Below, piece by piece: positions 1,923-63,037 of a stretch of DNA of 64,000 bases (within the stretch, counting starts at the first letter, position 1; each line of letters starts with the position of its first letter). The position numbers and the translations under genes were made by a program. The notes under the pieces were generated by a model, which saw only the letters and a program-made list of their open reading frames with translations, did no database searches and was not told where the DNA came from. This stretch comes from Okamejei kenojei. Its lineage: Eukaryota. The stretch spans positions 5,704,001 to 5,768,000 of the forward strand of contig CM069154.1 in the NCBI GenBank assembly GCA_035221665.1, given 5' to 3'.

Positions 1923-2019
1923 ATGGCGGTGGGACAGGGAGAATTCACCCACCAGAAACAGCCCAGATCCAGGCGAACGGTCACTCTGCTGGTTCTTGTC
2001 GTTGTTGTTCTCACACCAG
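1923..2019 (+). CDS. Gene A exon 1, signal peptide
   Basis: ATG at 1923 gives MAVGQGEFTHQKQPRSRRTVTLLVLVVVVLTP(G); phase-1 donor CAG|GTAAAT. Confidence 0.7.
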
Positions 2020-5000
2020 GTAAATCGTTGTTTTACAAAATGCTCTGTTCATTAGAATTAGCTACCAGCAGATGATAAATTGCTCAACACTCGTTAGTTC
2101 CTGTAGTGACTTCCATCAGCGGTTGTTGTCGTGTTGTGTGCAGCCAAATTGCACACAGCTAGCTCCCTGTGGAGAAGGGAGATAACTATCTACAGCTTGC
2201 CTTGCCTTGTGGACCTCACTGAAACTTACCAAACATACCAAATAGTGAAAGCCTGTATAGTGTGGATGGGGTGAGGATGTTTCCACTAGTGGGAGAGTCT
2301 AGGACCAGAGGTCGCAGCCTGAGAATTCAAGGGCATTCCTTTAGGAAGGAGATGCAGAGGAATTTCTTTAAAAGGTGGTGAAACTTTGGAATTCACTGCC
2401 GCAGAATGCTGTGGAGGCCGTCGATAAATATTTCTAAGGCAGAGATGGATAAATTCTTGATTAGTACGGGTGTTAGGAGTCTTGGGGAATAGGCAGGAGG
2501 ATTTAGTTGAGAGGGAAAGGTAGATCAGCCATGATTGAATGGAGGAGAGTAGACTTGATGTGCCAAATGGCCTAATTCTGCTCCTAGTACTAATTAACTT
2601 ATGATCTGTTCAGAATTATTTACTAACACCTTGAATTATTTTGAGCACAGAGCAGACTACTGGGCTACAAGCTGGTAAAGATAAAGTGCTTGCAGACTTG
2701 TTCTTTCCTGCACAAACGACTGTTGTGATGCTGTGCACACAGCTAACTACCTGTAGAAAATGACCCGACAGCTGGCCTTGTTGATTATGGGTGTAGGGGT
2801 AATTCTTGCCCCCCAGACCAGAGAGTTTGTTCCACTATTCTGGTGCAAACTATCTCCAGGTGAACTTTCTCAGTAACTTTACAGCAGACCAGCTAAATGC
2901 TTTACCCCTTGCATATCTCTTTACTTCCACCCTCGCTGACTGTTGGTCTGAAGACGGGTCTCAACTCGAAACCTCACTCTTTTCTTCGCTCCAGAGATGC
3001 CACCTGACCCGCTGCGTTACTCCAATATTTAGTGTCCATCAAAGACACACGGCACTCCCTTGACGCACTGCAATGGGAAATGTTGAACCTAAACCTTAGC
3101 ACATTCAAAGAAAAAACCTGTGAAAGCCAGCCATTGGGAACAAGCGGGCATCTCAAATGAGGAAGCAGCAGAGTGACTGTCCAATTTAGCATTTGGAGAA
3201 GTTGTGGTAAACTCTCCCTTCTGAGAAAAAACAGCTGGACTGATCTGATGTGTCTCCACCCCAGCTCCTGAATCTGCAGAGTTTCACATGTGTTCGAGTC
3301 ATAGAGTGATACAGTATAGAAACAGGCCCTTCGGCCCAACTTGCCCACACCGGCCAACATGTCTCAGCAACACTAGTCCCACCTGTCCACGTTTGGTCCA
3401 TGTCCCTTCTAACCTGTCCTATCCATGTACCCGTCTTAACTGTTTCTTAAATGATGGGATAGTCCCTGCCTCAACTAGCTCCTCTGGCAGTTTGTTCCAT
3501 ACACCCACCACCCTTTGTGTGAAAAAGACACCTCATGATTATTCCAGGTGGACGTGGAGTTTGAAACATCAGTGGGAGATCCAGCTTCCTCCAACGCCCG
3601 GGAAGTTTAGTTCAATGGGGCAGAAAGTGCTGGCGTAACTCAGTAGGTCAGGCAGTATCTCATGGGTCTTGACTTTTTTTAACGTCACCTATCCATGTTC
3701 TCCACAGTTGCTGCCTGACCTGCTGAGTCACCACAGGCAACTGGCTATTCAACTTTGGTAAAACACAAAGTGCTGGAGTAACACTGCAGCTTCAAGCTGC
3801 AGCTCTTGGTGACTTTCCTTTAGTGACTTTAGAGACACAGCACGGATCAGGCCCTTTGGCCATCAAGACCATGCCGTTCCAGCGATCACCAGCACACTAA
3901 CATATCCTACTCACGAGGAACAATTTACAATTTTAACAGAAAGCCAATAACTACAAAACTTGCAACATCTTTAGAGTGTGGGAGTACTGGAGCACCAGAG
4001 AAAGTCCATGCTGTCACGGGGAGAACATACAAACTCCGTACAGACAGCACCCGATGTCAGGATCAAACATGGGTCTCTGACGCTGTAAGGAAGCAAACTC
4101 TACCCCTGTGCCCACCATGTCTCTCCCATAACATGTTCTCCAAGCGATGTTGCCTGACCCGCTGAGCCATCACAGGCAGCTGGCTAATCAGCTTTAGTAA
4201 AGCACAAAGTGCTGGAGTAAATCAGCAGGACAGACAGCACCTCTGGAGAAATAACATGGATAGGTGACATTTAGGGTTGAGACTAGAATGAGGGGTAGGC
4301 CATTTAGGAAAACTTTTCACCCAGAGAGTTCCACGTTCTCCAGAGTTAGTTCCTGACCCATTTGAGTTACTCCAACACTTTGTGTCCTTTTGGTGTATCA
4401 ACCAGCATCTGCAGTTCCTTGTTTCTACTAGTTCAATGGGGGGAAGTGGGTTTTTTGTAGTGAGATTGAACACGGGGTGGAGTCAGAGTGAGAGACAGGT
4501 TGGCTTCCTGTCACATGACCACCACTCAGGTCAAGCCACGCCACAGGGAAGGGAGGATCTGGGCGCCAGGTAGATTCAGGAGCAGTTCTGCTTTCACTGG
4601 AACTTGGGGAACAATACTTGGTGAAATGGGAATTAACCCCAGTGGGAAGAAAAGCATTAAAGTGCAACAGGATCAATGCAAAAGAAGAGAGACACAAAAT
4701 GCTGGAGTTAACTTAGCGCGACGGGCAGCATCTCTGGAGAGAAGGAAATGGGTGAGGAAAACCTCTCCATCAGTTTCTCCAGAGATGCTGCCCATCCCGC
4801 TGAGTTACTCCAGCTTTTGTGTCTATCTTTGGTGTAAACCAGCACCTGCAGTTCCTTGCTAACATGATCTATGCGAAAAAAACCCCATGAACCTGTCTGA
4901 ACAGCACAAATACATGTGTTTTATTGTTTAAACTCAGCTTGTGTTGCTGCAGTGTGAGTGATCTTTCATCAGTAATGTGCCAACAGGGTCAAGGGGAATA

Positions 5001-8000
5001 ACTGGACCGAGGAGGTGAGGGGAGAGTTGCGGCAGTCGGTCACTGTGGAATGTCAGTATGGTCAGGAATTTCAGTGACTACAAGAAGCTATGGGGAGTAA
5101 AGGTAAATATCACCTGTCATCATTCTACAGTGGTTTCTACTGATCAACCCACGACAAGGGAGAACATCGATGACTGATATCAAAACACAACGGATACTTT
5201 CAGTAACCATCGAACAACCTGGAGAAGAGTGATGAAGGATGATCTACTGGTGTGCCATAGACATACCATCGTAATCTTCGATGAATCGACCTCCATCTAA
5301 TTGAAGGTTTCGAAGGTACGTTGACGATCTCTCCTCATTCTCCAAAGGTGAATATTCCAGCCTGGGAAATGCGGCTTCATTCTGGACGGCGACTCGGGGG
5401 CCACACATCGCCGGGGATCAGTGTGAGGGGGGAGGGGGAGCACATTTACTGGGGTCCTGGCCCATGGGGCCACACAAGAGCCCACTGTCCAGGAGCAGTG
5501 TGTGTGGGGTGGGCGGAGCTGTGTGTGTGGGGTGGGCGGAGCTCATCAATGGGGACCAGCGGTTTTGCTGCTGGCGGCTCATTTCCCCCAAAGACGATCG
5601 CTCCAGGACCAGAACCTCTGCCGCCCCTCACTGGGGCAAGAGGGGGAACCGCCCCCTCACCCTCTCCCCCTGCCCATCACTGTCACACCCACCATGCACA
5701 CAACATCTGAAGAAGGGTCCCAACCCTATACATCGTCACGTTCATTCCTTCACAGATGCTGCCATGACCTGTGCTGAGTTACTCCAGACTTTGTGTTTTG
5801 CTCAAGATTCCAGCACCTGCAATTCCTTGTGTCTCACAAACTTTGGTGATTCATGAGCTCAGTTTATTGTTGTCGTCTGTACCGACGCACAGGGGAAAAA
5901 AGCTTTTACCGTGTTTCCAATGAAACATAGAAACATAGAAATTAGGTGCAGGAGTAGGCCATTCAGCCCTTCGAGCCTGCAACCGCCATTTCAATATGAT
6001 CATGGCTGATCATCCAACTCAGTATTCCCGTACCTGCCTTCTCTCCATACCCCTCTGATCCCCTTAGCCACAAGGGCCACATCCAACTCACTCTTTAATA
6101 TAGCCAATGAACTGGCCTCAACTACCCTCTGTGGCAGAGATGTTCCAGAGGACTCACCACTATCTCTGTGTGAAAAAAGTCTTTCTCATCTCGGTCTTAA
6201 AGGATTTTCCCCCTTATCCTTAAGTTGTGACCCCTTGTCCTGGACTTCCCCAACATCGGGAACAATCTTCCTGCATCTAGCCTGTCCAACCCCTTAAGAA
6301 TTTTGTAAGTTTCTATAAGATCCCTCTCAATCTCCTAAATTCCAGAGAGTATAAACCAAGTCTATCCAGTCTTTCTTCATAAGACAGTCCTGACATCCCA
6401 GGAATCAGTCTGGTGAACCTTCTCTGCACTCCCTCTATGGCAATAATGGTCCTTCCTCAGATTTGGAGACCAAAACTGTACGCAATACTCCAGGTGTGGT
6501 CTCACCAAGACCCTGTACAACTGAAGTAGAACCTCCCTGCTCCTGTACTCAAATCCTTTTGCTATGAAAGCTAACATACCATTCGCTTTTTTCACTGCCT
6601 GCTGCACCTGCATGCCTACTTTCAAATGACTAGTGTACATGACACCTCCAGGTCTCGCTGCATCTCCCCTTTTCCTAATCGGCCCATTTAAATAATAGTC
6701 TGCTTTCATGTTTTTGCCACCAAAGTGGATAACCTCATATTTATCCACATTATACTGCATCTGCCAAACATTTGCCCACTCACCCAGCCTATCCAAGTCA
6801 CCTTGCAGTTCCTTGCATCCTCCTCACAGCGAACACTGCCCCCAGCTTAGTGTCATCCGCAAATTTACTTGGAAGATATTGCCTTCAATTCCCTCATCCA
6901 GATCATTATATATATTGTAAATAGCTGGGGCCCAGCACTGTGCCCTGCGGTACCCCACTAGTTTATTGCCTGCCTTTGTGAAAAAGGACCCGTTTTACTC
7001 CTACTCTTTGCTTCTGTTTGCCAGCCAGTTCTCTATCACATCAATACTGAACCCCTAATACCGTATATGCTTTTAAGTTTGTTATACTAATCTCTTATGT
7101 GGGACCTTGTCGAAAGCCTTCTGGAAGTCCAGATATTACCACATCCACTGGTTCTCCCTTATCCACGCTACTAGTTACATCCTCGAAAAATTCCACAAGA
7201 TTCGTCAGACATGATTTACCTTTCGTAAATCCATGCTGACTTTGTCCAATGATTTCACCACTTTCCAAATGTGCTGCTATCCATCTTTAATAACTGACTC
7301 TAGCAGTTTCCCCACTACCGATGTTAGACTAATGGTCTGTAATTCCCCGTTTTCTCTCTCCCTCCCTTCTTAAAAGAGGGGTTACATTTGCTACCCGCCA
7401 ATCCTCAGGAAACTACTCCAGAATCTAAAGAGTTTTGAAAGATTATCACTAATGCATCCACTATTTCCTGAGCTACTTCCTTAAGCACTCTGGGATGCAG
7501 CCTATTCTGGCCCTGGGGATTTATCGGCCTCTTTAATCTATTCAATTTACCCAACACCACTTCCGACTGACCTGGATTTCACTCAATTCCTCTTTGACCC
7601 ACAGGTCCCCTGCTATTTCAGGCAGATTATTTATGTCTTCCTTAGTGAAGACGGAACCAAAGTAGTTATTCAATTGGTCCGCCATATCCTTGTTCCCATG
7701 ATCAAACTCACCTGTTTCTGACTGCAAGGGACCTACATTTGTTTTAACTAACCTCTTTCTCTTCAACATATCTATAAAAACTTTTGCAGTCAGTTTTTAT
7801 GTTCCCTGCCAGTTTTCTTTCATAATCTATTTTTTCCTTTCCTAATTAAGCCTTTGTCCTCCTCTGCTGGTCTCTGAATTTCTCCCAGTCCTCTTGGTAT
7901 GCTGCTTTTTCTGGCTACTTTGTACGCATCATCCTTTGCTTTGATACTATCCCTGATTTTTCCCTTGTTATCCACGGATGGCACTACCTTCCCCGATTTA

Positions 8001-11000
8001 TTTATTTTGCCAAACTGGGATGAACAATTTTTGTAGTTCATCCATGCAGTCTTTAAATGTCTTCCATTGTATATCCACCGTCAACCCTTTTAGAAATTAA
8101 TTGCCAGTCAATCTTGGCCAATTCACGTCTCATACCCTCAAAGTTGCCTTTCTTTAAGTTCAGAACCATTGTTTCTGAATTAACAATGTCACTCTCCATC
8201 CTAATGAAGAACTCAACCATATTATGGTCACTCTTGCCCAAGGGGCACGTTACAACAAGACGGCTAATTACCCCTTCCTCATTACTCAGAACCCAGTCTA
8301 AAATAGCCTGCTCTCTCGTTGGTTCCTCTACATTGTTGATTTAGATAACTATTCCCGCATACATTCCAAAAAATCCTCTTCCTCAGCACCCCTGCCAATT
8401 TGATTAACCCAATCTATATGTAGATTGAAGTCACCCATTATAACTGTTTTGCCTTTGTCGCACGCATTTCTAATTTCCTGTTTGATACCATCCCCAACTT
8501 CTCTGCTACTGTTAGGTGGCCTGTACACAACACCCACCAGCGTTTTCTGCCCCTTAGTGTTTTGTAGCTCTACCCATACCGATTCCACATCCTCCAAGCT
8601 AATGTCCTTCCTTTCCATTGCGTTAATCTCCTCTCTCTAACCAGCAACGCTACCCCACCTCCTTTTCCTTTCTCTCTATCCCTCCTGAATATTGAATATC
8701 CCTGGATGATCAGCTCCCAGCCTACGTCACCCTGGAGCCATGTCTCCGTGATCACCAACTATATCATAATCATTAATATCTATCTGCACGTTCTCAACTC
8801 GTCCACCTTATTACGAATACTCCTTGCATTGAGACACAAAGCCTTCAGGCTTTGTCTTTACAACGCAACTTACCCCTTATACAATTTTGCTGAAAAAGTG
8901 GCCCTTTTGAGGGCCAAGTCATTGGGTATTTTTAAGGTGGAGATTGACAGATTCTCAATTAGTATGGGTGTCAAGCGATATGGAGAGAAGGCAGGAGAAT
9001 GGGGTTGAGAGGAGGAGATACTGTATATCAGCCATGAATGAATGGCGATGTAGACAAATATGGGGCAAAATGGCCTACTTCTGCCCCTATCACATGAACA
9101 TAAACGAAGAATCCTCATGAGATGAGTGATATAGACTTTACACTGAGCCACACACACTGTACAAGATGAGATACTCAACGGGCCGGGCAGCATCTGTGGA
9201 GAGAGAATGTGAGTTAATGTTTCAGGTAGATACCTCCAGCCAAATTGCATTATTTCCAATTCAGTCCGTGTAACGCAAATGGTCCATGGATCCTCCCGCT
9301 CCCAAGTTCTTCTCCAACGTAGAAGACATGTGCCTAACTCTAGCAGTAGGAAGATAACACAGCCTGTGGGACTCTGAAGGGCATGAAAGAAGTCTCTGAA
9401 TGCTTGCGACCATCCAGTGGCATCTTAATGGGCGAGCCTCCTGTCTAGATCATGAGGCTTGGTCCATCTATGGTGGCCTCAGAAGAATCCTTGCTTAAAT
9501 CTCTGTAGTGGGATTCAAACCAAGAATCTCCCAAACACCACTAAAGTGGCACAGAACGTGCTTTGTGACATTTAATGTTCAAAAACTTCATTTTCTTCAT
9601 CTCCACAAGGGTCTCAAACAAGCCGCCCAGACATGGTCACCTCCACCTCTACAACAATGAGCACAAGGGCTTCCACCACAACCACTCTGACCACCCTGAC
9701 TCTAGATGCACCAACCACCAAGGAAGCAAGTTCCATTGAGGCTTCTGGTTCAACATCTCCAAACAGGTCTGTAACTCGAAGAGCCAACTCAGCCTCACCT
9801 GAGAACAAATTAGTTAAGTTCAATTCAGCTCGGTTTAAAGATACAGTGTGGAAATGGGCCCTTTAGCCCGCCGAGTCTGCTCTGAGCAGTGATCACCCCA
9901 TACTCCAGCTCTGTTCTACACACTGGGACATTGTACAGAAGCCAATTAACCTACAAACCCGCACGTCTTTGGAATGTGGGAGGAAACCGGAGAACCTGGA
10001 AAAAACTCTTGCGATCACAGGGAGAACGTACAAACTCTGTACAGACGGCACCGGTAGTCAGGATCAAACCCGGGTCTCCTGCGCTGTGAGGCAGCAACTC
10101 TACCACTGCGCCACCGTGCCAACCCTAAATGGTCAGCATGGTCTCAATGGGCCAAAGGGCCTATTCCCATGTCATATATATTTAAACTCTAAACTACTTT
10201 ATAGTTCCTTAAATATCAATAGAATTATTGATAATGTTCTAGAATTTAACCTGCACTGCATTCAAATCTAGTTCCACATTTTACTTTCTGGATCGAAACA
10301 CATGGTTCATTACTGGGGAGGGAAACAGTCCTATTACCATGAGCTCGTCATTGTTTTTTCTTGTATTTTGCAGGGAGGCAGATACATTTCCATGGCAGTT
10401 TGTTCTTGCGATTGCCTTGACAATTGTCTTTCTTCTGTTAATTGCTGCCATTATCCTATGTGTAAAAATAAGGCAGAAAAAGAAAACCGGTAAGTTCCGT
10501 TGAATGTACGTAAATATCAAAGGGCACTCTTGTTGATGAACAAAGATTTGGCACTTCTCTCTGAGGTGTCTTTCACAAACGCAAACCATTCACCTAGCGT
10601 ATAACAGCAGGGAAAGACACCAAGTGCTGGAGTAACTCAGCAGGTCAGGCAGCATCTCTGGAGAACATGGACAGGTGACATTTCAGGGAGGCCAGAAACC
10701 AGGGTTCGATCCTGACTATGGCTGCTGTCTGTATGGAGTTTGTACGTTCTCCCTGTGAGTGTGTGGGTTTACACCAGAGAGACAGGTCCTTTGGCCCAAC
10801 TCGTCCTTACTGACGTCCAAGGTGCTTCCCTACGCACGTCCCACTTACCTGTGCTTGTCCCACATCACTCATCCCAACCTGTGCTTGTGCCACATCCCAA
10901 GCATTCATGTATCTCTCCAAATGTCTTTTAAACACTGGAATTGGACTTGCCTTTACTACTCCCTCTGTCGGTTTGATCCGTGTGATGAGAGTGGTCAAAT

Positions 11001-14000: not shown

Positions 14001-17000
14001 CAGAGACAGGTGGATTTATAATAAGGGCAGAACCACAGGCCCTTCGAGCCTGCAGGGGATCCGTACAGGGCAATCAGTTGGCTCAACTAACTGGGCAGAG
14101 AGTACTTTGGTTTTTTCTCATCTAGTCTTATCACTAAAAGCTGTGAAGACATCTTCCTGCATAGACGGTCCAACCCCTTAAGAATTTCCCGGAGTCAAAC
14201 CGAGTCTACTCCAGGACAGATCACTCCTCTATGGCAATGGGGAGGTAGAAGGAGTGGTGGAAGGGACTCAAATCCTTTTGGGCTAATACATACCATTCGC
14301 TTTTAATTAGAATCGGCCAATACTAATAGTCTGTTTTACTGTTTTTGCCACCAAAGTGGATAAACATCACATTTATCCAAATTATACTGCATCTGCCAAA
14401 CATTTGCCCACTCACCCAGCCTAAATGACAGAACAGTGTTGGGACTGAGGGAAGAGGGAGGTAACTGAGAATAATTCCCCAGGGCCTGATGGTCTGCATC
14501 CCAGAGTACTCAAGGAGGTGGCCGAGAAATCGTGGATTAATTGGTGATAATTTTCCAATGTTCTCTCGACTCGGATCAGTTCCTGTGAACTGGAGGGTAG
14601 CCAATGGAACTCCACTTTTTAAGAAAGGAAGGAGAGAGAAAACGGGGAATTATTGTCCAGTTAGCCTTACATTGGTAGTGGGGAAGATGCTGGAGTCGAT
14701 TATGAAAGATGTTATAGCAGCGCATTTGGAAAGCAGTGACAAGATCAGTCAAAATCAGCATGGATCTATGAAGGGGAATTATTCATGCATTACTAATCTT
14801 TTGGAATTTTTTGAGGATGGATGGATAAGTAGAATGGATAAGGGAGAACCAGTGGATGTGGTGTATCTGTCTTTGACACGGTCCCACATAAGAGATCAGT
14901 GTGCAAAATTAGAGCACATGGTATTGGGGTAGGGTATTGACATGGATAGAGAACTGGTCAGCAGACAGGAAGCAAAGAGTAGGAATTAATGGGTCCTTTT
15001 CAGAATGGCAGGCAGTGACTAGTGTGGTGCCGCAAGGTGCTGGCATCCCAGGTATATACAATATATATTAACGATTTAAACGAGGGAATTAAATGTGACA
15101 TTTCTAAGTTTACGGATGACGCAAAGTTGGATGGTAGTGTGAACAGCAAGGAGGATGCTATGAGACTGCAGGGTGACTTGGATAGGTTGGGTTAGTGGGC
15201 AGAAGCATGGCAGATAGAGTATAATGTGGATACATGTGAGGTTATCCACTTTGGTGGCAAGAACATGAAGACAGATTATTATCTGAAGGGTGTCTGATTA
15301 GGAGAAGGGAAGGTGCAACGAGACCTGGCTTTGCTTGTACATCAGTCACTGAAAGTAAGCATGCAGGTACAACAGGCAGTGAAGAAAGCCAATGGCATGT
15401 TGGTCTTTATTGCGAGAGGATTTGAGTTTAGAAGAAAGGAGATCCTACTGCAGTTGTACAGGGCCCTTGTGAGACCACTCTGCAGTATTGTGTGCAACTT
15501 TGGTCTCCTAATTTGAGGAAGGACATTATTGCTATTGAGGGAGTGCAGCGTAGGTTCACCAGGTTATTTCCCGGGATGACAGGCCTGACATATGATGATA
15601 GAATGTGTTGACTGGGCTTGTATTAGCTGAAATGTAGAAGGATGAGAGGGATCTTATAGAAACATATAAAATTCTTAGAGGATTGGACAGGTTAGATGCA
15701 GGAAAAAATTCCCGATGTTGGGGGTCCAGAACCAGGGACACAGTTTAAGAATAAGGGGTAGGCCATTTTGGACTGAGATGAGGAAACCTTTTAACACCCA
15801 GAGAGTTGTGAGTCTGTGGAATACTGCCACAGAGGGCAGTGGAGGCCAATTCACTGCATGTTTTCAAGAGAAAGTTCAATTTAGCTCTTAGGGAATCAAG
15901 GACTATGGGGGAAAAAGCCAGAGTGGGGTACTGATTTTGGATGATCAGCCATGATCATATTGAATGGCAGTGCTGGCTCAAAGGGCCAACTGGCCTACTC
16001 CTGCATCTATTTTCTATTTCTCCATGTAAAAATTGTCCCTTATGTTGGATAGCGTTCGTGTGCGGTGATCGCTGGTCGGTGCGGACTCGGTGAGCCGAAG
16101 AGCCTGTTTCCACGCTGTATCTCAAAACTAAACTTCACCATATTCAAAGAATGGTAAATATGTTACCTGTCAGGTCATAATGAGGTTTCCCATGAGATTT
16201 AACATTGTTCTACAGTAGACTGTGTCAGGAAGCAACTATTCCATAACCCAATGGAACTTCCTGAAGCTTTCATAAAATGCTACATAAATACAATATCCTA
16301 CTTCAGACCTTCTGATGCAGAAAATTTCCATCAAGTCTCTGTAATTCTTATAAAGGGTAGTGCAGTGGCACAACTGGTAGAGCTGCTACCTCACAGCACC
16401 GGAGTCCCGAGTTCGATCCTGACCTCGGGTGTTGCCTGCATGGAGTTTGTACGTTCTCCCTATTGACCGTGTGGGTTTCCTCCAGGTGCTCCGGTTTCCT
16501 TCCACATCCCACATTGGGACATGTACATGGATAGGAGAGGTTTAGAGGGATATGGGCCAAATGCAGGCAGGTGGGACTCAGGTAGATGGGGGCATGTTGG
16601 TCGGCGTGGCCAAGTTGGGCCGAAGGGCCTGTTTTCGCACTGTATGACCCAATCCCAAAGACGTGCAGGTTAGTAGGTTAATTGGCCTCTATAAATTGCC
16701 CCACTGCTGTCGGTGGCAGAGAATTCCACAGATTCACAATTCTCTGGGTGAAGATTCCACAGATTCACAACTCTCTGGGTGAAAAGTGTGCCCCTGGGAG
16801 AACTAATGTGAACGGGTGATCAATGGTCGGTGGGCCGAAGGGCCTGGTTACATATTGTATTTCTAAACTAAGTTTCATGAAAGGGATTCAAGTTTGACAT
16901 CAATGGATAAAATGCAACATTATCCTTTGCATGTTTGACTTCAATGAAGTCCATATCAGAATTAATTATCATTATATTTTTCAGGCTCAAATGGAAAGAG

Positions 17001-44133: not shown

Positions 44134-44182
44134 GTCAGTCATACCAATAAAAAGCATCAGATCACCCAAAAACACATTTTAA
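44134..44182 (+). CDS. Unit C candidate short tyrosine-free terminal exon
   Basis: TTTCATTGTCCAG| phase 2 gives (R)SVIPIKSIRSPKNTF*; AATAAA at 44314-44319. Confidence 0.45.
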
Positions 44183-49364: not shown

Positions 49365-52300
49365 CTTTCAAAGGAAGGTCAATATTTTATTGTTAAGCAG
49401 TATGTCAGCAGTCGATCTTTAAGCTAAAGCAAATTGAAATATTTTATTGTTTATAGCTTCCACCACAGAATGCTGAATATGGCTCTCTTTTAATTCTTGT
49501 CATGAACATGGGCTTGTACACTCTTGAGTTTAGAAGGATGAGAGGGGATCTCATTGAAACATATAAGATTGTTAAGGGTTTGGACACGCTGGACGCAGGA
49601 AACGTGTTCCCGATGTTGGGGGAGTCCAGCACCAGGGGCCACAGTTTAAGAATAAGGAGGAAGCCATTTAGAACAGAGACGTGGAAACACTTTTTCTCAC
49701 AGAGAGTGGTGAGTCTGTGGAATTCTCTGCCTCAGAGGGCGGTGGAGGCAGGTTCTCTGGATGCTTTCAAGAGAGAGCTAGATAGGGCTCTTAAAAATAC
49801 CGGAGTCAGGGGATATGGGGAGAAGGCAGGAACGGGGTACTGATTGGGGATGATTAGCCATGATCACATTCAATGGCGGTGCTGGCTCGAAGGGCCGAAT
49901 GGCCTACTCCTGCACTTATTGTCCATTGTCTATTGATTTAATTGGAACAATAAATGAAATGGGTTAGCTGTACATTTTGCACAAAGGACTATATTGTACT
50001 TTATGTTATTTTTTTTATGATTAGCATGGTTCAGTTAGAATTTGCCATTGAGCCATCTTTATATAGAGTCACAGAGTGATACAGTGTGGAAACAGGCCTT
50101 TCGACCCAATTTGTCCACACCAGCCGACACGTCCCAGGTACACTAGTCCCACCTGCCTGCGCTTGGTTCATATCCCTCCAAACTTAACTGTTTTTTAAAT
50201 GTTGGGATAGTCCCAGCCTCAATTACTTCCTCTGGCAGCTTGTTCCATACACTCACCACCCTTTGTGTGAAAAGGTTCAAGAGTCAAGAATGTTTTATTG
50301 TCATATGTCCCAGATAGGACAATGACATTCTTACTTGCTGCAGTAAACATAGTAATAACGGGAGAAGGTCAGTGTGTATATATACACATACACACATACT
50401 CAATAAACAAATGATTATCATGCAATAATCACTAGTTTACCTCAATAGTTACCCCTCAGATTCCTATTAAATCTTTTCCCCATCACCTTAAACCTATGTC
50501 CTCTGGGCCACAAATTCCCTTACTCTGGGCAAGAGACTCTGTACATATATTTAGATTAAAACCCAGGGCTATATTGTCCTTCTGTTTTAATGTAAATATA
50601 TGAAGAGTGATACGCTCTAACTGAACCATGCTCATCATAAAATAATATACCAAGCAGAAGCAAAGGGGATGATCTGCCTCTTTACGCCAGATCTGCCACG
50701 TGTTCTCTGGAATGCCGGAGGTTGAGGGGAGACCTATATAAGATTATGAGTGGCATTGAGATGGGAGACAGTCAGAAACATTTTCCCACCCTGGAGAGCA
50801 TTGCTTTAAGGTGTTTGGGGCAACGTTTAAAGGACATGTAAGGCCCAAGTTCACTTTTCTTTTACACAGAGGGTGGTGGGTGCCTGGTATGCACAGCTGT
50901 GTGTGATGGTGGTGGAGGCAGATTATGAAAGTGGCATTTAAGAGGCTCTTGGACAAGCACATGGATATGCAGGGATACTGATTATGTGCAGGCAGATGGG
51001 GGTTAGTCTCGCTATCATGGTCAGTACAGGGGCGGCACGGTGGCGCAGCGGTAGATTTGTTGCCTTACAGCGCCTGTGACCCGGGTTTGATCCTGACTAC
51101 GGGTGCTGTCTGTATGGAGTTTGTATGTTCTTCCTGTGACCCGCGTGGGTTATCGCTGGGAGCTACGGTTTCCTCCCGCACTCCACAGACGTACAGGTTT
51201 GTACGCTAATTGGCTTTGTGAAATTGTAAATTGTCCTGGTGTGTGTAGGATAGTGTAAGTGTGCGGGGATCGCTGGTCGGCGCGAACTCGGTGGGCCGAA
51301 GGGCCTGTTTCTATACTGTATCTTTAAAATAAACAAAACTAAATTACAGACATTGTGGGCCGAAGGGCCTGTTCCTGTACCGTACTGTTCTGTAATCTGT
51401 ATTTTTAATCTTATACGCCAACTCCATCTAATCCCCATAACCCTTGGACACTCACATGCGCCCAGATTGTACTTGGTGTTTCGTGGATTATGTGGAGGGA
51501 TATTATAGAGAACACACCGCATAAATAAATATCCAAGAGATAGCATAGAGACACATTCTATTAATGATCAGACATCAGATGTGAATTCCTTACCACAGAA
51601 TTGCAGACTGCATTATATTCTTCCTCTTTGTAACTGATTCCTTTCCCCCCTGAGGATGATAAAGAAATAGGTTGCAATAATATGACTAAAAATTAATACT
51701 GTAAATCCGTTGCAGTACATATTTAAGGAATAGTTGTCTGCAGTGTGTTTTGACATTTGCAATAGACAAGTCGACTGAAACGTAATCTTTTACTTCAAAG
51801 CAGCACAGTGGCGCAGCGGTAGAGTTGCTGCTTTACAGCGCCAGAGACACCGGTTCGATCCTCATTACGGGTGCTGTCTGTACGGAGTTAGCACGTTCTC
51901 CCCGTGACCTGCGTGGATTTTCTCCGGGTGCTCTGGTTTCCTGCCACACTCCAAAGACGTGCAGGTTTGTACGTTAATTGGCTTCTGGAAATTGTCGCAA
52001 GTGTGTAGGATGGAACTAGTGTAGGGGGTATTGCTGGTTGGTGAGGACCCGGTGGGCTGAAAGGACCTGTTAGAAACATAGAAACATAGAAAATAGGTGC
52101 AGGAGTAGGCCATTAGGCCTTTCGAGCCTGCACCGCCACTCAATATGATCATGGCTGATCATTCAACTCAATGTCCTGTACCTGCCGTCTCTCCATACCC
52201 CCTGATCCCTTTAGCCACAAGGGCCACATCTAACTCCCTCTTAAATATAGCCAATGAACTGGCCTCAACTACCTCTATGGCAGAGAATTCATGTGAAAAA

Positions 52301-55300: not shown

Positions 55301-58300
55301 CTAAGCAGACTGAGGCTGCTCCTAGCCATGAAACGGCAAATATAAAGTCACAGACCTGGGTTCTCTGACAACAATGGTGACTCTTCCCCTGATCATACAA
55401 GACTGTGGGGGAGGCTGGGAAGATGCAGCTGATGCTCCAACCTTCATTACATAAGGGTCCAAGGGCCAGTAATGTCCAAGAGGGCCATACCAAGACCAAC
55501 ATATGGAGGGTCCATTTATTGGGGTTCCTACCAGCGCCTTGTTTAGGACTGGAGAATGCCTCCCTACTATATGATTTGGGAGAAGCGGGCAGATTGCAGC
55601 TGACCCTGATGCTAGTGTCCATGCTTATGTGCAAACACCAGCGCGCACAAGAGCCACGCTCCGGAAATGACACTGAGTTGCTATTCCGGAGGGGGCTGGT
55701 GAGTCAATGGAACAATCCCTTCCCAGCAGTATCAATTATGTAGTACCTCACCAGTTCCAGCAAGATATGATGCAAGTGACTGCAAACAAATATGAGACAC
55801 CTGTTTAATGTGCATTACTGAAAGTGCCTATGGTGACCCAGGTTCTGGGCACCCATGAGTCCTTCTTTGACGGGACAGGAGGTTCGGTGTTAACACGTCA
55901 TCCAACTGGTGGCTGCAGCAATTACTGCATTTGGCACTATGGTGCAAGGGACAATCATTCCTCAAACTCACAACAGGTATGCCAACTCTAAACCAAAAAT
56001 TTGCTGCTCTATGTAGGGCGACTACTGTACAAATGCCTGAAATATGGTTTGGAACGGACCTTGTCATGAAAATTCATGAAATTCATGATGAGGCCAAAGC
56101 AATTGGCTTAATGTAGTCAAGCATTTCGAGGCCACCTATTCGCAACCCTGGGTTAATACTGAAAGTCAGATCCAGGGGCTGAGTTCAGCAGGGACAGGCC
56201 AGTGGGGCAACGAGGGTACCCACCGAGACAGACCGGCTACAATCCCAATATGAGCAGACACCAGCTTTACAGGTCAACTGTAGAGGTACAGGGATTTTTC
56301 TTAACGATAAAGTTCTGGTGGCCAATCACCTATTGGAGGTTGATTACAAATGTTTTCTAATGAATGATGCTGTATAATGTATGATATGTTTATACTAAAT
56401 ACTGTCTCCCGTTGAGTTTATCTCAGGGATAGATCCACCTCAACAGCACGAGCCTAATAAAATGTGGGTGTTTTCTGCTCCAGAGCTTGAACATATAGAT
56501 AATGGTGATTGATAAAGCCATTAATCATCCTCCACAATTGTTTCTAATATTTCCCCAGATCTCAAAAAGATGGGTGTTGTAGAGTAATTCTTGTCCTCAA
56601 TCACTTAAATTCGTTACTGCTAAACACCTGCTATCACAGGGCTGTTATGTGGCAACTATTTGTTTGCAAGATGTGTATTATTCACTACCAATTCATGCTC
56701 ATTATCGCAGGTACTTGAAATTTAATTGGATGGCAAGCTGTGGCAATACAAAGCATTGACTCCTGGATTAAGTTCAGCAACCAGGCTATTTATTCAATTG
56801 TTAAAACCTGTGCTGGTGCTATTCAGCCCATCATCACATTGTAATGGCTTATTTAGCTGATATCTTAATTATCAGCAACACTAATCAGTCAGCTGAAGAA
56901 TCGGTGCTTGAGTCATAAGGGGTTGCTCCATCCAACTAATTATCAAGTTACAGCCAACCCAAAATATTGAGAATTTGGGGTTTCTTATTAATTCCGTTGC
57001 TATCACAGTAACATTACCAACAACCAAGGTTGTCGATGATGATGATGTCTGCACTTGCCTCCCACAAAACTTTATCCCTCCTTCCGAGAAGACGCTAAGG
57101 TCATTGGTAAATGGGGAGCAGATTCCTGCAGTACATTCGGGCCTTTGCATTATCAACATTTGCAGAGAGCACGTGAACTAGCACTAAAATCGAATGCAGG
57201 CCATTTTCATCAGGTTAACCAGTTACCAACCACAGCTCTCGCAAAATTGCAGTGGTGCATTGTTAATGTTAATCTAGCTACCAATAACATTTTGGGTACT
57301 AGACCCTTCACTAATCTTCCAGACTGATGTCAGCGCTCTCGGATGGGTAAAGGCATATTGCTCCTCAATGAAGGATTTACACATTCAACTCCAGATTGAT
57401 AACACCTCAGCCGTGGCATATATTAATCATATGGGAGGAGCACGGTCATTATCATGTGTTAACTGGGTACCGTCATGTGGCATTGGGGTATGCCAAGGCA
57501 TATCTGCGTTTCAGCCATTTATTCACCATCTATAGCTAATGTGGTGGCCGACCATAGGTCGAGTACGTTTCATGCCAATATAGAGTGGATGTTGAATTCT
57601 AAACTTTGTCACACAATTGTCACTTGATTTGGGTTGCCAGCCATTGATCTGTTCCATCCAGATTACATCACCAGTTGCCTAAATATGTTTCATGGGAGCC
57701 AGATCCAGGTGCAGTTGCTGTGGATGCAGTCTCGTTACATTGGGGGCACTAACATTTTATGCAATTCCTCCATCTTTTCATCCTGAACTGTCTCACCACA
57801 ATAGAGCGAGACTCCGCCACAGGTGTTTTGGTGGTCCCAGATTGCCCAACACAACCATGGTTCCCCTTCGTGTTTTCAATGATGGTTCAGTCATTCATGA
57901 TGATTCCCAGCAGCAATAATTTGTTGGTGCATCTGGTTACAGGAGAAAGTCACCCTTTACATAACTGTATTAATTGTTGGTCTGCAGGTTCTGACCAGAC
58001 AATTCCAAGGACTTGGATTGTCGAACAGGGCCATGGTGGTTCTCACTGCAGGCTGGCGAAATAGCACTCAAAACACACTATAAGGTTCACATAAAGAAAT
58101 GGGAACGGTTTCTGTGTACAATCCAATAGGTCTTATCATAATGCAAGCATATGTGATGTGTTGGAGTTCCTTGCTAAGTTGCATTTTGATGAGCATCTGT
58201 GTTATAGTGACATTACCAGCGCTCGGAGTGTGTTGTCCTCTTATTGCGTGCAGTCTTCAGAACAACATCCTATAGGGTCTCATCTGTTAGTATCCCGATT

Positions 58301-59972
58301 TATGAGGAATTTTTAATAAAAATCCTCCGAAACCTCGCTATACAGAAATCTGGGACATCACTCCTGTTCTCACAATGCTTCAGCAATGGGCTCCAATTAC
58401 TTCATTATTTACGAAGAGATTAACTCTTGCTGTGGTTATGCTAATAGAGCTGGTTTCAGCACAACGTGTACAAACATTACAATTCTTACGAATACCTTGT
58501 ATGCATTTGTCTGTCAATGACATTAACTTCTACGTTTATGATTTAATCAAACAAAGCAGGCCCGGTCTGGCTGGAATCAAGGTGACGTTTAAAGCCTATC
58601 TTGTTGACCAAATGTTATATGTAGTTACGCCATATAACTTAAGACAATATATTAAGGTAACAAGGAGTCTCAGAGGTTCTGGGACAGGACTGCTCATTAA
58701 TCACAAAAAGACATATAAAAGAGTGTCAGCACAAACTATTTCTACATGGTTGAAACAGGTTCTCAATTATGCTGGAGTCGACATTCCTGTCTTTAACTCT
58801 CACTCCACCAGGGCGGCATCAATCTCCGCGGCGAAGGCTCAGGACGTGCCGCTAGACCAAATCTTTGAGGCCGCAGGATAGTCTAGAGAAGCAACATTTT
58901 CTCAATTTTCTGCCAAATCTGTAGAGACCATGCCACGGTTTCAGCATGCTGTTTGGGTCACATTTAATTCATTTGCTTTGTTTTCTATCATTGTTTGTAC
59001 TTTTCCCTGAGACAGAGGGGTTATTCCTGTGTTTGTTCTTGTTAACAATAATTATTGATTAATTCGAAGCAATGTTCAATATATTATTTCTTCTCTACTG
59101 TGTCAACCGAAGCAGATTGTCGTATGGTGTGCATCTACTGCATGAAAATACCGAGCTTTGAAATCTTCATGTAGTCACTCACGTGACTCCGAAGTAAAAT
59201 AGTAAGATTAAACGAGAACTTACCAGTTCGAAGTTTGATCCTTATTTTATGAGGAGTGACGTTGAGGGATTACGTGCCCTCCGCTTCCACCCTCATAATC
59301 TAAGAGATCATCTGGTAGTTCTAGTCTTCTACGAGCCTTACTATGTTACTTCAGCTATTTGTTTTCTGCGTTTTCACGCCGCTGCTTTGAAGTATGACGC
59401 GCATGCGCCTGGCGGGGCTTCTTCACGTAATTCCTCAACATCACTCCTCATAAAATAAGGATCAAACTTCGAACTGGTAAGTTCTCATTTAATCTTACTA
59501 TTAACGTTCAGAGTTTTGTCCGAGCCAAGTTTAATAGCCTGATGGCTGTGGGGAAGTAGCTATTCCTGAACCTGGTCATTGCAGTCTCCAGGCTCCTGTA
59601 CCTTCTACCTGAAGGTAGCAGGGAGATGAGTGTGTGGCCAGGATGGTGTGGGTCCTTGATGATACTGCCAGCCTTTTTGAGGCAGTGACTGCGATAGATC
59701 CCCTCGATGGAAGGGAGGTCAGAGCCGATGATGGACTGGGCAGTGTGTACTACTTTTTGTAGTCTTTTCCTCTCCAGGGCCCTATCGTCTGATCTATCAT
59801 CATCAAAAAGGCAGCCAACAACATCAAAGACCCACACCATCCTGGCCATCTCACCACTGCCATCGGGAAGAAGGTACAGGAGCCTGAGAACTGCAACATC
59901 CAGGTTCAGGAACAGGTTCTTCCCTACAGGCATCAGGCTATTTAACACAACAATCTGAACTACAAAAGACTA

Positions 59973-60040
<68 letters not shown>

Positions 60041-63037
60041 GCACTGTTATATTGTTTATTCTTTTTTTCTGAGTTTTTGTTATATTATTTATTATGAATA
60101 CATATTCTGTTGTGCTGCAGCAAGTAAGATTGTCTTTGTTCTATCTGGGACATATGACAATAAAACCCACTTGACTCTTGTAGGGTTAGAACTGAAGGAA
60201 TGGGAGAGGTTTCTGGAGAATTCCACATTTCCCTCTTCAGCTCATCCACTGGAAGTAGAAAGTTTTCTCATGTACAATTGGAATGTTTAGAGTTGCGTCA
60301 CTTACTCGCTGCTGAATATTTCTTGCATTTTGTGACAAGAATAGCAGTAACAATCAAAATTCCAAATATGCTTCCCAGAAGAATGGATACATTTGCGAAA
60401 CTGTGGGAACAAAAAAAAAAGCAAAATTTAATTATCCCAAGCCAATTTTCATACTTGCTGTTTCTTACGTTTTTCAATTTTCTTCTCCCATTTCTGTTCG
60501 ATCATATCATAAATGACAGGAACAGAATCAGGCCATTCGGCCCGTAAAGTCTACTCCGCCGTTTAATCCTGGCTGATCTATCTCGCCCTCCTAACCCCAT
60601 TCTCCTGCCTTCTCCCTATAACCCCTGACACCCGTACTAATCAAGAATCTATCTATCTATTTCTGCCTTAAAAATATCCATTGACGGCCTTCTGTGGCAA
60701 AGAATTCTTCAGGTTCACCACCCTCTGACTAAAGAAATTCCTCCTCATATCCTTCCTAAAGGATTGTCCTTTAATTCTGAGTCTATGACCTCTCATCCTA
60801 GACTCTCCCACTAGTGAAAACATCCTCTCCGCCTAAGCCTTTCACTATTTCTTATGTTTCAATGCGATCCCCCCTCATTCTTCTAAAATCTTGCGAGTAC
60901 AGGCCCAGCGCCGTCAAACGCTCATTCATAACACTCATTCCTGGGATCTTTGGTGTAAAACTCCTCTTGACCCTCTCCAGAGTCAGCACATCCTTCCTCA
61001 GATACGGTGCCCAAAATTATTCACCATGCTCCAAAAGCCGCCTTACCAGCGCCTTATAGAGCCTCAGCATTACATCTCTGTCTTTGTATTCTAGCCCTCT
61101 TGAAATAATTGATAACATTGCTAGCATCTGTTGCTAAAACCACTGAAGTTTGTGGAATGCAGACCCCCAGACATTAACTATGTACCCAACACCATGTACA
61201 CACACAAGTAATATGCAGTTGGCTATTCAGCTTTAGTAAAGCATGAAGTGCTGGAGTAACTCAATGAGACAGGCAGCATCTGTGGAAGGAATGGATTGGC
61301 AATGTTTCAGGTCGGGACCCTGCTTAAGATTGAGATACAAAGAACTGCAGATACTGGAATTGAGAGTAAAATGCAAGTTGCTGTAGCAACGCAGCAGGTT
61401 AGATAGTATCTGTTGAAGGAATGGATAGGTGATGTTTCAGGTCTGGATGAGACTGAGAGGTCACAAACTGCAGATGTTGGAATCTTAAGAAAATACAAGG
61501 TAACTCCGTGGGTCAGGAGACACGTGGAACCCCAAAACTGCAGTCTTGACCCAAACCATTGTCTATCCTCAGTTGCTGCCCGACCTGCTGAGTTGCTCCA
61601 GCACTTTTCATCTTATTCAAGATTCCAGCATCTGCAGTTCCTTCTGTCTCCATTCAGCTTTAGTAGTTTGCAAACCCCCACATCGTTCATGTTCCCACGG
61701 AAACACAATTGAGCAAATTATTAGAGAGCGATCAAGAGAGGAAGCCCTGAGTAATATTCACCCTTAGAATGAAGTTCCCCCGAGAAACTACATAAGCGGC
61801 AACTCAGTTTAAGTATAGAATCATATTTACACCATAGCTTGTTGCAGGTTGTTATACTTCCTATTTAAAACTTTATTTTTCTTTTCAATTTGCAATAAAA
61901 GAGTAACTGAAAGCAACAAGGGGAAGTTTATTTTAAAATAGTTTGTGGTTTGGGCCATTACCAGAGGTGAGTGGTTTAATTTAGTTTAGAGATACAGTGC
62001 AGAAACAGTGGAGGCAGATGGAATGAAAGTGTTCGAAGGGGAACCAGGTAGATAGTTTAACATGAAAAGTGGAGAGTAAAGGACAGTGAGACCAACTGGG
62101 AATAATCCAACATCGAGCTAGTAGAGATTAGATGGATTGAACAGTCTTTTCCTATGATGTAACAATCCTGCAATTCTGTACATCAAATTGCTAGTAGTTT
62201 AGGTTACACAAAAATGCTGGAGAAACTCAGTGGGTGAGGCAACATCTATGGAGCAAAGGAAATAGGCGACGTTTCGGGTCGAGATGTCTATTTCCTTAGT
62301 CTGAAGAAGGGTCTCGACCCGAAACGTCGCCTATTTCCTTCGCTCCATAGATGCTGCCTCACCCACTGAGTTTCTCCAGCATTTTTGTCTACCTTCGATT
62401 TTCCAGTTTTGTCTACCTTCGATCTGCAGTTCCATCTTAAACGTTAGTTTAGATTAGTTCTGTTTGGAGATAAAGTGTGTGGAAACAGGCTACCGAGTTG
62501 GCCCACCGAGTCCGTGCCAACCAGCCATCATCCGTTCGCACCAGTTCTATGTTATCCCACTTTCTCATCAACACTCTACACACTAGCGACAATTTACAGA
62601 AGTCAATTAACCTAAAAAACCTGGACGTCTTAGGGATGTGGGAGGAAGCCGGATCACGCAGAGAAAACTAAAGGGGTCACAGGGAGAATGTACAAACTCC
62701 ATAGAGACAGCACCCGTAGTCAGGATCGAACCTGGGTCCCTGACGCTGTGAGGCAGAAACACTACCGCTGCGCCACCGTACCGCCACTGTTTGTGGGAAT
62801 TAGATCTGGAGATGCTTGGTGCTTTCATCAATGCAGTAACTGCAACAGCTGCACAATCCGAATCATTCCAGAGTTTGGATGCATGTTTAAGCTTCTACTT
62901 TCTCCACTCCTTCATCAACAGACTCATCTGGGCATTGATATTGAGCGGGTTACCTGGTTGTGGTTGAAATGTGGCTCGTAAAATGGAATTTGCTTAGTGA
63001 TGAGCGTTCTGGGCCCATTTGTTTCGACGAAGATCCA
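49227..63037 (-). CDS. Gene D (5'-partial): convergent receptor paralog; exons 63037-62954(?), 61860-61831(?), 60400-60306, 51649-51594, 49364-49227
   Basis: Phase-compatible exons with the same TM(2/1), cyto1(1/0), terminal layout as genes A and B; the ectodomain is presumed to lie beyond the window. Confidence 0.7.
49505..49935 (+). mobile_element. CR1 LINE 3' fragment
   Basis: GLYTLEFRRMRGDLIETYKI...LWNSLPQ plus 3' UTR. Confidence 0.88.
51030..51345 (+). mobile_element. HE1-type V-SINE
   Basis: A/B boxes, core and tail. Confidence 0.85.
51594..51649 (-). CDS. Gene D cytoplasmic exon 1
   Basis: (R)GKGISYKEEEYNAVCNSV; CCTCAG| and |GTAAGG, phase 1 to 0. Confidence 0.75.
51801..52502 (+). 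mobile_element. HE1-type SINE split by an antisense CR1 3' fragment (52072-52445)
   Basis: The SINE resumes after the insert, with CTGTT present on both sides. Confidence 0.75.
53734..53960. mobile_element. PIF/Harbinger-type MITE inserted in a CR1 fragment
   Basis: Long TIRs AGGGCCTGTCCCACTTGGCGATTTT / AAAATCACCAAGTGGGACAGACCCT; 3-bp TTA TSD; removing it restores GAGAGAGTTAGATAGAGC. Confidence 0.85.
54865..59500 (+). mobile_element. DIRS1-like tyrosine-recombinase retrotransposon, full structure, degenerate ORFs
   Basis: Inverted terminal repeats, ICR at about 59164-59277, decayed RT (~56560-56900), RNase H and methyltransferase-like region (~57300-57900), tyrosine recombinase. Confidence 0.93.
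58375..58881 (+). pseudogene. DIRS tyrosine recombinase fragment
   Basis: LVSAQRVQTL and FNSHSTRAASISAA catalytic-box motifs; premature stop after AAG. Confidence 0.85.
59501..59960. mobile_element. Rex1/Babar-like LINE 3' fragments in both orientations; host of the DIRS (other part at 54680-54864)
   Basis: IIKDPHHPGHTLISLLPSGRRYRSL motif; similar fragments at 17970-18140 and 26200-26345. Confidence 0.65.
59975..60039. repeat. (TTA)n microsatellite
   Basis: About 21 perfect units. Confidence 0.98.
60306..60400 (-). CDS. Gene D transmembrane exon
   Basis: Poly-T...CCCACAG| FANVSILLGSIFGILIVTAILVTKCKKYSAA |GTAAGT. Confidence 0.85.
61831..61860 (-). CDS. Gene D candidate small stalk exon
   Basis: AATAG| (R)KYNNLQQAM(V) |GTAAAT, phase 2 to 2; an alternative phase-1 reading GSITTCNKL is also possible. 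Confidence 0.4.
62207..62392. repeat. Palindromic Penelope-derived repeat with a hammerhead-like core
   Basis: About 75-bp inverted arms; CTGAAGA-AGGGTCTCGACCC-GAAACGTC at 62301-62328. Related copies at 4690-4860, 11627-11840, 18308-18640, 31690-31900 and 32240-32455. Confidence 0.7.
62954..63037 (-). CDS. Gene D candidate Ser/Thr-rich stalk exon
   Basis: GSSSKQMGPERSSLSKFHFTSHISTTT with CAG|GTAACC donor; acceptor is weak. Confidence 0.4.

Follow-up and report, generated by a model that had tools for sequence, protein, structure and literature searches.

How many working receptors does a cluster of immune receptor exons encode? The question is raised by a stretch of 64,000 nucleotides from the skate Okamejei kenojei (contig CM069154.1, positions 5,704,001 to 5,768,000 of the forward strand; hereafter the window). 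An earlier reading of its letters, the original prediction, had proposed a hidden cluster of four receptor units with CD300/PIGR-like immunoglobulin V-set (IgV) domains, which would share an exon layout, differ in ectodomain and tail, and together make up a paired inhibitory and activating locus. We found that the receptor cluster is real and was correctly classified, and that it is an ordinary member of a known family, with one intact gene rather than four. Most probably the window samples an extensive array of CD300/pIgR-like (MDIR-type) receptor genes of skates, a multigene family in mid-turnover, with unit B complete, unit A broken, unit C devoid of an ectodomain and unit D partial.

The window is free of N runs and dense in interspersed repeats, namely, reverse-transcriptase fragments of long interspersed nuclear elements (LINEs), a many-copy short interspersed nuclear element (SINE), Tc1/mariner remnants, and a DIRS-like recombinase. 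IgV exons were searched for by motif scans in all six frames, by tblastn against the window with 150 and then more than 180 relatives as queries, and by a six-frame unfiltered (--max) hidden Markov model (HMM) scan of open stretches of at least 20 codons, using a profile built from 70 related domains. The three approaches agreed, which indicated that only two intact IgV exons are present, both belonging to unit B on the plus strand (28601-28912 and 30194-30508), both bounded by phase-1 introns and both carrying a four-cysteine pattern. The sole further IgV signal in the HMM scan consisted of three short pieces at 4976-5229, matching consecutive parts of the profile in three different frames. 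Motif scans, loose tblastn, and the --max HMM scan yielded no further IgV exon between 44 and 64 kb or on the minus strand, and no flanking non-receptor gene was found within the 64 kb. Receptor searches and folding were run exon by exon rather than on joined (spliced) models.

The proposal of four receptor units held in part. Four transmembrane (TM) exons with the announced tails are present, and all of them enter in phase 2, as had been claimed (A, 10374-10489; B, 31979-32094; C, 41388-41495; D, 60400-60306 on the minus strand). In contrast, unit B alone proved to have an intact ectodomain, both in the HMM scan and in tblastn searches for which over 180 relatives served as queries. At least three receptor subfamilies are represented in the 64 kb. 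Relatives retrieved with one of the Ig exons of the window were nearly all predicted proteins from cartilaginous fishes, the closest being those of the skates Leucoraja erinacea and Amblyraja radiata (76-94% identity per exon), in agreement with the chondrichthyan host that had been anticipated.

Unit B (27158-36123, plus strand) is the sole complete gene in the window, and apparently a functional one. It comprises seven exons, whose summed lengths give 345 codons, with consensus splice sites throughout and fitting phases. Exon 1 (27158-27194, phase 1 out) contains the start codon and signal peptide and matches the N-termini of relatives P0001 and P0182. Exons 2 (28601-28912) and 3 (30194-30508), both phase 1-1, encode two four-cysteine V-set domains, IgV1 and IgV2, which are 79% and 90% identical to those of L. 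erinacea P0001; the two-IgV ectodomain announced for the cluster is found here, with both domains intact. Exon 4 (31200-31239, phase 1 in, phase 2 out) encodes a short stalk, TITKPEVPSNKA, and exon 5 (31979-32094, 116 nucleotides, phase 2 in, phase 1 out) encodes an uncharged TM segment, 83% identical to residues 243-283 of P0001. Exon 6 (35166-35203, phase 1 in, phase 0 out), a small cytoplasmic exon translating as NDCKNSETPTTAK, was located from splice sites and phase alone and was then confirmed by A. radiata XP_032898784.1, which reads NGCKNSETPTTAK at the same place. Exon 7 (35944-36123, stop codon at 36121-36123) encodes a tail with two immunoreceptor tyrosine-based inhibitory motifs (ITIMs), IAYSTV and VEYSAL, and is 93% identical to A. 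radiata P0182 and 78% identical to Pristis P0007.

Comparison with relatives supported this gene model. The A. radiata protein XP_032898784.1 (354 residues) aligned with B across all seven exons (IgV1 76%, IgV2 86%, tail 93%), and L. erinacea XP_055510919.1 was 79% and 90% identical in IgV1 and IgV2, respectively. Both ITIMs are kept in Amblyraja, Pristis, Hypanus, Pristiophorus, and Heptranchias. With the sawfish Pristis protein, identity reached 78% in the tail and 54-58% in the two IgV domains, so that conservation of the tail far exceeds that of the Ig domains. A conserved tail beside faster-changing Ig domains is typical of immune receptors with fast-evolving binding domains. Incidentally, if the donor of exon 5 (32095) is read through, the protein ends in ...QKSK, the counterpart of ...RESK at the C-terminus of the L. 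erinacea model. Since that model ends right after the TM exon, a short-tailed form of B may exist as well.

To which receptor family do these V domains belong? In Pfam, IgV1 matched V-set (PF07686) with 39.9 bits (E 5.4e-10), above the 26-bit cut-off, and IgV2 scored 22.2 bits, just under it. Four cysteines are invariant in each domain, C22, C34, C42, and C83 of IgV1 in 13 orthologues and C22, C36, C44, and C85 of IgV2 in 14. Four-cysteine IgV domains had been taken as the mark of the CD300/PIGR/TREM group, and the pattern applies to both domains of B but not to the A-type IgV domains of skates, which lack the second (C-C') pair and have W-S/G-K-G at that place. In phmmer searches against the PDB, the B domains matched pIgR (1e-17 to 1e-22), then CD300 (1e-6 to 1e-10), then NKp44, FcmuR, and TIM. 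The best pIgR stretches were D4 and D5, IgV2 matching pIgR D5 and CD300. As the E-values for pIgR add up several domains, they overstate these matches. AlphaFold2 gave models with V-type strand order for both domains, with a predicted local distance difference test score (pLDDT) of 92 for IgV1 and 83 for IgV2. In Foldseek, the top folds were CD300c, pIgR, and FcmuR for IgV1, and CD300c, CD300f, CD300a, and TREM2 for IgV2; ranks 1-15 were filled by CD300c, pIgR D1/D2, FcmuR, TLT-1, CD300a, NKp44, and TREM1/2, with CD300c first. By phmmer and Foldseek alike, the B domains were nearest to this receptor group and not to antibody, T-cell receptor, or adhesion V domains. The V domains of the window are thus best placed, by sequence and by predicted fold, in the CD300/pIgR/TREM/FcmuR/NKp44 group. 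This part of the original prediction was borne out, and grouping with a non-immune family did not occur.

A domain tree bore on the age of these domains. B-D1 and B-D2, the two domains of B, each formed a clade with counterparts from rays, sharks, and the chimaera Callorhinchus (P0087), whereas A-type domains made up a clade of their own, with lineage-specific tandem duplications. Domains D1-D4 of bird and axolotl pIgR fell into separate clades, and B-D1 and B-D2 nested in none of them. This tree is short (109 columns), was built without CD300, TREM, TIM, or teleost pIgR, and bears on pIgR and the elasmobranch subfamilies only. From the reach of the B-D1 and B-D2 clades and the separate place of the pIgR domains, we take the two-domain B type to be old and not the orthologue of a particular pair of pIgR domains; being common to skates, rays, sharks, and chimaera, it would be older than their split.

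Based on these features, B would be a type I membrane protein with a signal peptide, two V-set domains (each with a C-C' disulfide beside the canonical B-F one), a short stalk, an uncharged TM segment, and a two-ITIM tail. Ligand would be bound by the outer V domain, the tyrosines of the two ITIMs would then be phosphorylated, and phosphatases of the SHP type would be recruited, damping cell activation. Domain family, motifs, and conservation are observed, and by analogy with ITIM receptors of the CD300a/CD300f kind we infer that B acts as an inhibitory immunoreceptor.

Downstream of B lies unit C, which raised the question of whether the window also encodes an activating receptor. Self-BLAST revealed that the 5' end of B (26838-27554) is copied at 39905-40716 on the plus strand, in two blocks of 95% and 92.6% identity with a repeat inserted. 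Within this leader copy of about 0.8 kb, the start and signal exon (40238-40274) has exactly the coding sequence of exon 1 of B. Beyond 27554/40716, self-BLAST found no further non-repeat match between the two regions; the copy ends at a repeat, a short dispersed element with many copies in the window and distinct from the SINE-like repeat. The TM exon of C (41388-41495, plus strand, phase 2 in, phase 2 out), containing ...VWGVLRWVIFGVLLLF..., is 81% identical to residues 409-450 of L. erinacea P0086 and 75% identical to Rhinoraja P0159. The last exon (43751-43820, plus strand, stop codon at 43818-43820), KKTAETLEMGSAVVEGGEEQRR, matches the C-terminus of P0086. As had been foreseen, the TM segment contains an arginine (Arg), in VLRWVIFG near the outer end of the helix, and the tail is short (23 residues). 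In mammalian receptors, an Arg near the outer end of the TM segment goes with adaptors of the FcRgamma type, and by analogy C may pair with such an adaptor. Two features of the surrounding sequence were noted, a Tc1/mariner-type remnant (42614-43187, plus strand) in the intron between the TM and last exons, and a G+C-rich region (43700-44180) with long open frames on both strands in several frames, which encloses the last exon.

With the 3' end of L. erinacea XP_055510911.1, the TM exon of C shares 81% identity and the last exon about 83%; in that protein, a C-like 3' end follows three A-type IgV domains and a mucin stalk. No stalk exon (36.1-41.4 kb searched) and no IgV exon (HMM scan) turned up in the interval from the leader copy to the C TM exon, and splicing the leader copy directly to the TM exon resulted in a frameshift and a stop. 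Without an ectodomain exon, and with this frameshift, C alone could not make a receptor. The likeliest reading, to which we give about half of our belief, is that C is what is left of an activating gene after the loss of its IgV exons.

A tentative alternative, which we hold possible but do not favor, is that B and C are one transcription unit, in which the same two-IgV ectodomain is spliced either to the TM and ITIM exons of B or to the Arg-TM cassette. Equally tentatively, these mutually exclusive 3' cassettes would give an inhibitory form or an activating form pairing with an acidic-TM adaptor, that is, a paired receptor encoded by a single gene. The idea comes from the stingray Hypanus sabinus, in which a single annotated gene has as its isoforms XP_059806113/114 (X1 and X2, uncharged TM and ITIM tail) as well as XP_059806115/117 (X3 and X4, Arg-TM). 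The accessions are consecutive and labeled as such, and in the three that were compared (X1, X3, and X4) the first 227 residues are identical, divergence starting from the stalk onward. These isoforms are RefSeq predictions, however, and the Arg-containing ones carry a stalk segment of their own, for which no exon was found near C. The window has the same order along one strand (ectodomain, ITIM cassette, Arg cassette). The phase-2 end of the B stalk exon also fits the phase-2 start of the C TM exon, giving ...PSNKA-R-DIVLNV... in frame (junction 31239 to 41388). Yet, this phase match is a family-wide property, not particular to B and C. The exons of C are intact despite the lack of an ectodomain of its own, and Rhinoraja XP_078276461.1 has an uncharged TM followed by an Arg-TM within one predicted transcript, both of which speak for joint use. 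On the other hand, a duplicated promoter and leader lie between B and the Arg cassette and suggest a formerly separate gene, none of the annotated relatives combines a B-type ectodomain with an Arg-TM in one skate protein, and the matching cassette of L. erinacea is joined to an A-type ectodomain (XP_055510911.1). What remains of our belief goes to C being used otherwise, for example by an A-type gene.

Unit A was expected to encode one IgV domain plus a mucin stalk. Its leader exon (1923-2019, plus strand, ATG at 1923, phase 1 out, donor GT at 2020-2021) is 80% identical to residues 1-35 of L. erinacea XP_055510911.1, and its residues 1-17 are 94% identical to A. radiata P0163. The mucin-like Ser/Thr-rich stalk exon (9610-9766, plus strand, phase 1 in, phase 2 out) is indeed present, with 71-72% identity to its counterparts in L. 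erinacea P0161 and A. radiata P0163. It is followed on the same strand by an uncharged TM exon (10374-10489, phase 2 in, phase 1 out), which has the same length as that of B (116 nucleotides) and is 78% identical to residues 410-446 of P0161. A small cytoplasmic exon, GSNGKRIISQENPAESFT (16985-17037, phase 1 in, phase 0 out), emerged from a search for splice sites and phase and is 89% identical to residues 545-562 of Rhinoraja P0160. The last exon (18686-18841, stop codon at 18839-18841), 94% identical to residues 463-514 of P0161, contains the ITIMs VIYTTV and VVYATI plus NTYMNL. ITIM tails had been claimed for both A and B, and both were recovered, on exons 93-94% identical to skate orthologues; the two ITIMs of each tail fit the consensus (S/I/V/L)xYxx(I/V/L). 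These 3' exons of A, all correctly phased, are 71-94% identical to L. erinacea XP_055510917.1 (three IgV domains, mucin stalk, TM, and ITIM tail), and A appears to be the counterpart of L. erinacea XP_055510916/917, which have three or four A-type IgV domains with the same stalk, TM, and tail.

In contrast, the IgV exon of A (4987-5315, plus strand) is disrupted. Compared with its relatives, it follows a frame path of 0>2>0>1>2>1>0, that is, six frame changes, and contains a TAA stop; tblastn pieces lie in three frames, and HMM positions 7-28, 27-57, and 58-79 are matched in three different frames. With 329 nucleotides, not a multiple of three, the exon cannot keep phase. It is the single IgV exon between the leader and the stalk of A, where orthologues have two to four A-type IgV exons. 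As the only IgV exon of A is destroyed, A would be a pseudogene or, at best, the source of an Ig-less product; the leader and the stalk both use phase 1, so that skipping the dead exon keeps the frame. The contrast between six indels in 329 nucleotides and none in about 580 nucleotides of the other exons suggests either continued use of the 3' exons or a recent and uneven decay. A faint likeness at 4887-4985, upstream of the IgV acceptor, to the end of another IgV domain had raised the idea of a processed copy (retrocopy), which was dropped as alignment spill-over.

We also considered whether assembly errors account for the breaks, in which case A would be a working one-IgV, mucin-stalked ITIM receptor. 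The leader, mucin, TM, small cytoplasmic, and tail exons of A show no indel or stop, the tail being 94% identical to that of L. erinacea, and uniform neutral decay should have struck these exons too. Yet, some 2.2 kb of other receptor exons in the window are intact beside the six frame changes and the TAA packed into 329 nucleotides, the length of the exon is not a multiple of three, and a single IgV remnant stands where orthologues have two to four such exons. An assembly error is unlikely since the other receptor exons in the window show no indel, and we give this explanation little credit; a broken unit A remains our reading.

Upstream of the A leader, an open stretch (1577-1735, plus strand) is 66% identical to the last 53 residues of Rhinoraja longicauda XP_078276461.1. 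In that protein, the matching segment comes after the Arg-TM exon. There may be an Arg-TM cassette just before the start of the window, or the Rhinoraja model may run into the upstream region of the next gene.

Another explanation concerns B itself, which might be the polymeric immunoglobulin receptor of cartilaginous fishes, a transcytosis receptor for polymeric IgM, as RefSeq names would have it. The relatives in Callorhinchus bear the name 'polymeric immunoglobulin receptor', teleost pIgR has a comparable two-domain layout, and the best PDB sequence matches of both B domains are pIgR D4 and D5. These matches, however, owe their E-values to summed domains, and by fold CD300c came first. The tail carries two conserved ITIMs and not a pIgR-type sorting tail, neither B-D1 nor B-D2 nests in a tetrapod pIgR domain clade, and Hypanus, Hemitrygon, Mustelus, and Callorhinchus also combine the same type of ectodomain with Arg-TM tails, as is typical of paired immunoregulatory receptors. 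We regard this possibility as very improbable. The survey by Akula et al. 2014 stated that sharks lack pIgR homologues (PMC4016189). At the level of the domain family this statement is outdated; B nevertheless departs from pIgR in its tail and in its place in the tree. Together with their RefSeq relatives, the receptors of the window reveal an abundance of pIgR/CD300-type V-domain receptors in cartilaginous fishes.

The last unit, D, lies on the minus strand. Its TM exon (60306-60400, phase 2 in, phase 1 out), containing ...LLGSIFGILIVTAILV..., is 48-50% identical to Hemitrygon akajei P0043 and P0191. The first cytoplasmic exon, GKGISYKEEEYNAVCNSV (51594-51649, phase 1 in, phase 0 out), has consensus splice sites and collinear weak matches to P0032, P0043, and P0191. 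The last exon (49227-49364), SSRDDEEDKLSD...KENISCQN followed by a stop, is 51% identical to residues 313-353 of P0191 (E 1e-4). The three exons are collinear, with consensus splice sites and fitting phases, and match XP_072886837.1 of Hemitrygon akajei, whose two IgV domains are almost the same. A GxxxG motif in the TM segment (GSIFG, in ...GSIFGILIV...) and a tail lacking an ITIM were described correctly; the tail tyrosines lie in ISYKEE and EEYNAV. Between 60.4 and 64 kb, neither an IgV exon nor a stalk exon of D was found. Unit D thus looks like a motif-less receptor gene of the opposite strand of which only the 3' half falls within the window, its ectodomain exons presumably lying beyond. 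Two further elements were seen in this region, a long trinucleotide microsatellite at about 59950-60075, translating as poly-Ile/poly-Leu in two frames and lying about 230 bp downstream of the D TM exon (minus strand), and an open frame in the long intron of D (57759-58881, plus strand) with a weak match to tyrosine recombinases that falls short of the cut-off (Phage_integrase, E 0.0015); this frame probably belongs to a DIRS-like element.

What, then, became of the paired locus? Although the four phase-2 TM exons with their announced tails and TM features are there and leader exons exist for A, B, and C, a locus of four functional genes (two inhibitory, one activating, and one neutral) is hardly credible, because the ectodomain is intact in B only, that of A being broken in six places and those of C and D being absent from the window. 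Modules of inhibitory type, of activating type, and without motif do coexist, as foreseen, but no pair with matching intact ectodomains occurs in the window; such a pair would exist if B were spliced to C, or could be supplied by genes beyond the window. Birth-and-death turnover, on the other hand, shows in the decay of an IgV exon, in partial duplication, and in a cassette without an ectodomain. That all subfamilies share their exon phases would explain the swapping of ectodomain and signaling modules.

Several observations weigh against the picture of an array in mid-turnover around one inhibitory receptor. The 3' exons of A are highly conserved and free of indels, which is odd for an old pseudogene, and a relic would hardly be expected to keep two intact exons with good splice sites, as C does. 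Motifs are the basis for both ITIM function and adaptor pairing. The likeness to MDIR was drawn from the description of that family. Finally, four sequencing runs (X1-X4, contigs; none recorded as RNA) showed depth over 30150-36149 at LINE and SINE repeats and zero at the stalk, TM, and tail exons of B; two of them had a depth of about 3.5 across 30150-30349, a bin into which the beginning of the IgV2 exon falls, a trace that allows no interpretation.

Mobile elements were noted along the window. LINE reverse-transcriptase fragments, 76-90% identical to one another, are scattered in the introns of A and B (20400-21538, plus strand; also 5925-8034, 14471-16027, and 32690-33670; RVT_1 E 1e-13 for 20400-21119). 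A SINE-like repeat, whose translation includes ...GRTYKLHTDSTR...GAVRQQLYRCATVP..., is present in more than 15 copies (e.g., 43406-43708, 9867-10268, 23369-23644, and 62634-62978), and a Tc1/mariner-type transposase remnant lies at 63542-63988 (minus strand; DDE_3, E 4e-12).

How does the window compare with known systems? Work by Cannon et al. 2006 (Immunogenetics 58:362), reportedly based mainly on cDNA, is said to have described skate MDIRs with a variable number of Ig domains, some with a charged TM, some with ITIMs, and some with neither. The window resembles that family in the tail types, C having a charged TM (Arg), A and B two ITIMs each, and D neither. It also resembles it in the skate host and in belonging to a large multigene family, the best matches being Rajiformes proteins (76-94%). 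None of the annotated relatives that we retrieved is named MDIR. In contrast to the cDNA work, the window provides a genomic layout, with exon phases, a decayed exon, and a cassette without an ectodomain. Skate MDIRs form multigene families, activating and inhibitory, that resemble CD300, TREM/TLT, and pIgR, with MDIR1-5 sequences under, for example, ABC86796.1, ABC86797.1, and ABC86799.1 (PMC3031540).

The cluster was not hidden, since its orthologues are already in RefSeq as pIgR-like or CMRF35-like, with models in Amblyraja, Leucoraja, Rhinoraja, Pristis, Hypanus, Hemitrygon, Narcine, Mobula, several sharks, and Callorhinchus. Likeness to the L. erinacea and A. radiata models is close: all exons of B correspond to XP_032898784.1, the 3' exons of A to XP_055510917.1, and the exons of C to the 3' end of XP_055510911.1, and the order of the L. 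erinacea accessions (...911, ...916/917, ...919) fits the order A then B in the window. The differences are that A has lost its IgV here and that the Arg-TM cassette follows a B-type leader copy, not an A-type ectodomain. What the window adds is the genomic layout, with exon phases and a snapshot of gene decay and partial duplication, a modest detail.

With mammalian CD300, the window shares V-set domains with a second C-C' disulfide and the clustering of ITIM-tailed (CD300a and CD300f) and charged-TM members, and CD300c, CD300a, and CD300f are among the top structural matches. CD300 proteins, however, have a single Ig domain, as opposed to two in B and one to four in A-type genes; identity is 22-31%, and the tree was built without CD300. 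Tetrapod and teleost pIgR provide the best PDB sequence matches and have tandem V domains with the same extra disulfide, whereas they have a transcytosis tail in place of the ITIM and Arg-TM tails seen here, and the domains of the window stay outside the D1-D4 clades of tetrapod pIgR.

A further comparison is with Hypanus sabinus XP_059806113 to XP_059806117, which have a B-type two-IgV ectodomain (about 48% identity per domain), an ITIM tail 74% identical to that of B, and an Arg-TM alternative. The Hypanus sabinus proteins P0183, P0017, and P0184 are RefSeq isoforms of one gene with an identical two-IgV ectodomain and either an ITIM tail or an Arg-TM end. In Hypanus both tails are annotated in one gene, whereas in the window a leader copy sits between B and the Arg cassette, and their link is putative. 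To our knowledge, the literature that we searched makes no mention of this isoform pattern. A single gene yielding inhibitory and activating forms through alternative 3' cassettes is the only point here that could change thinking about these receptors; if true, the dual-tail gene, annotated likewise in Hypanus sabinus, may be an old batoid route to a single-gene paired receptor.

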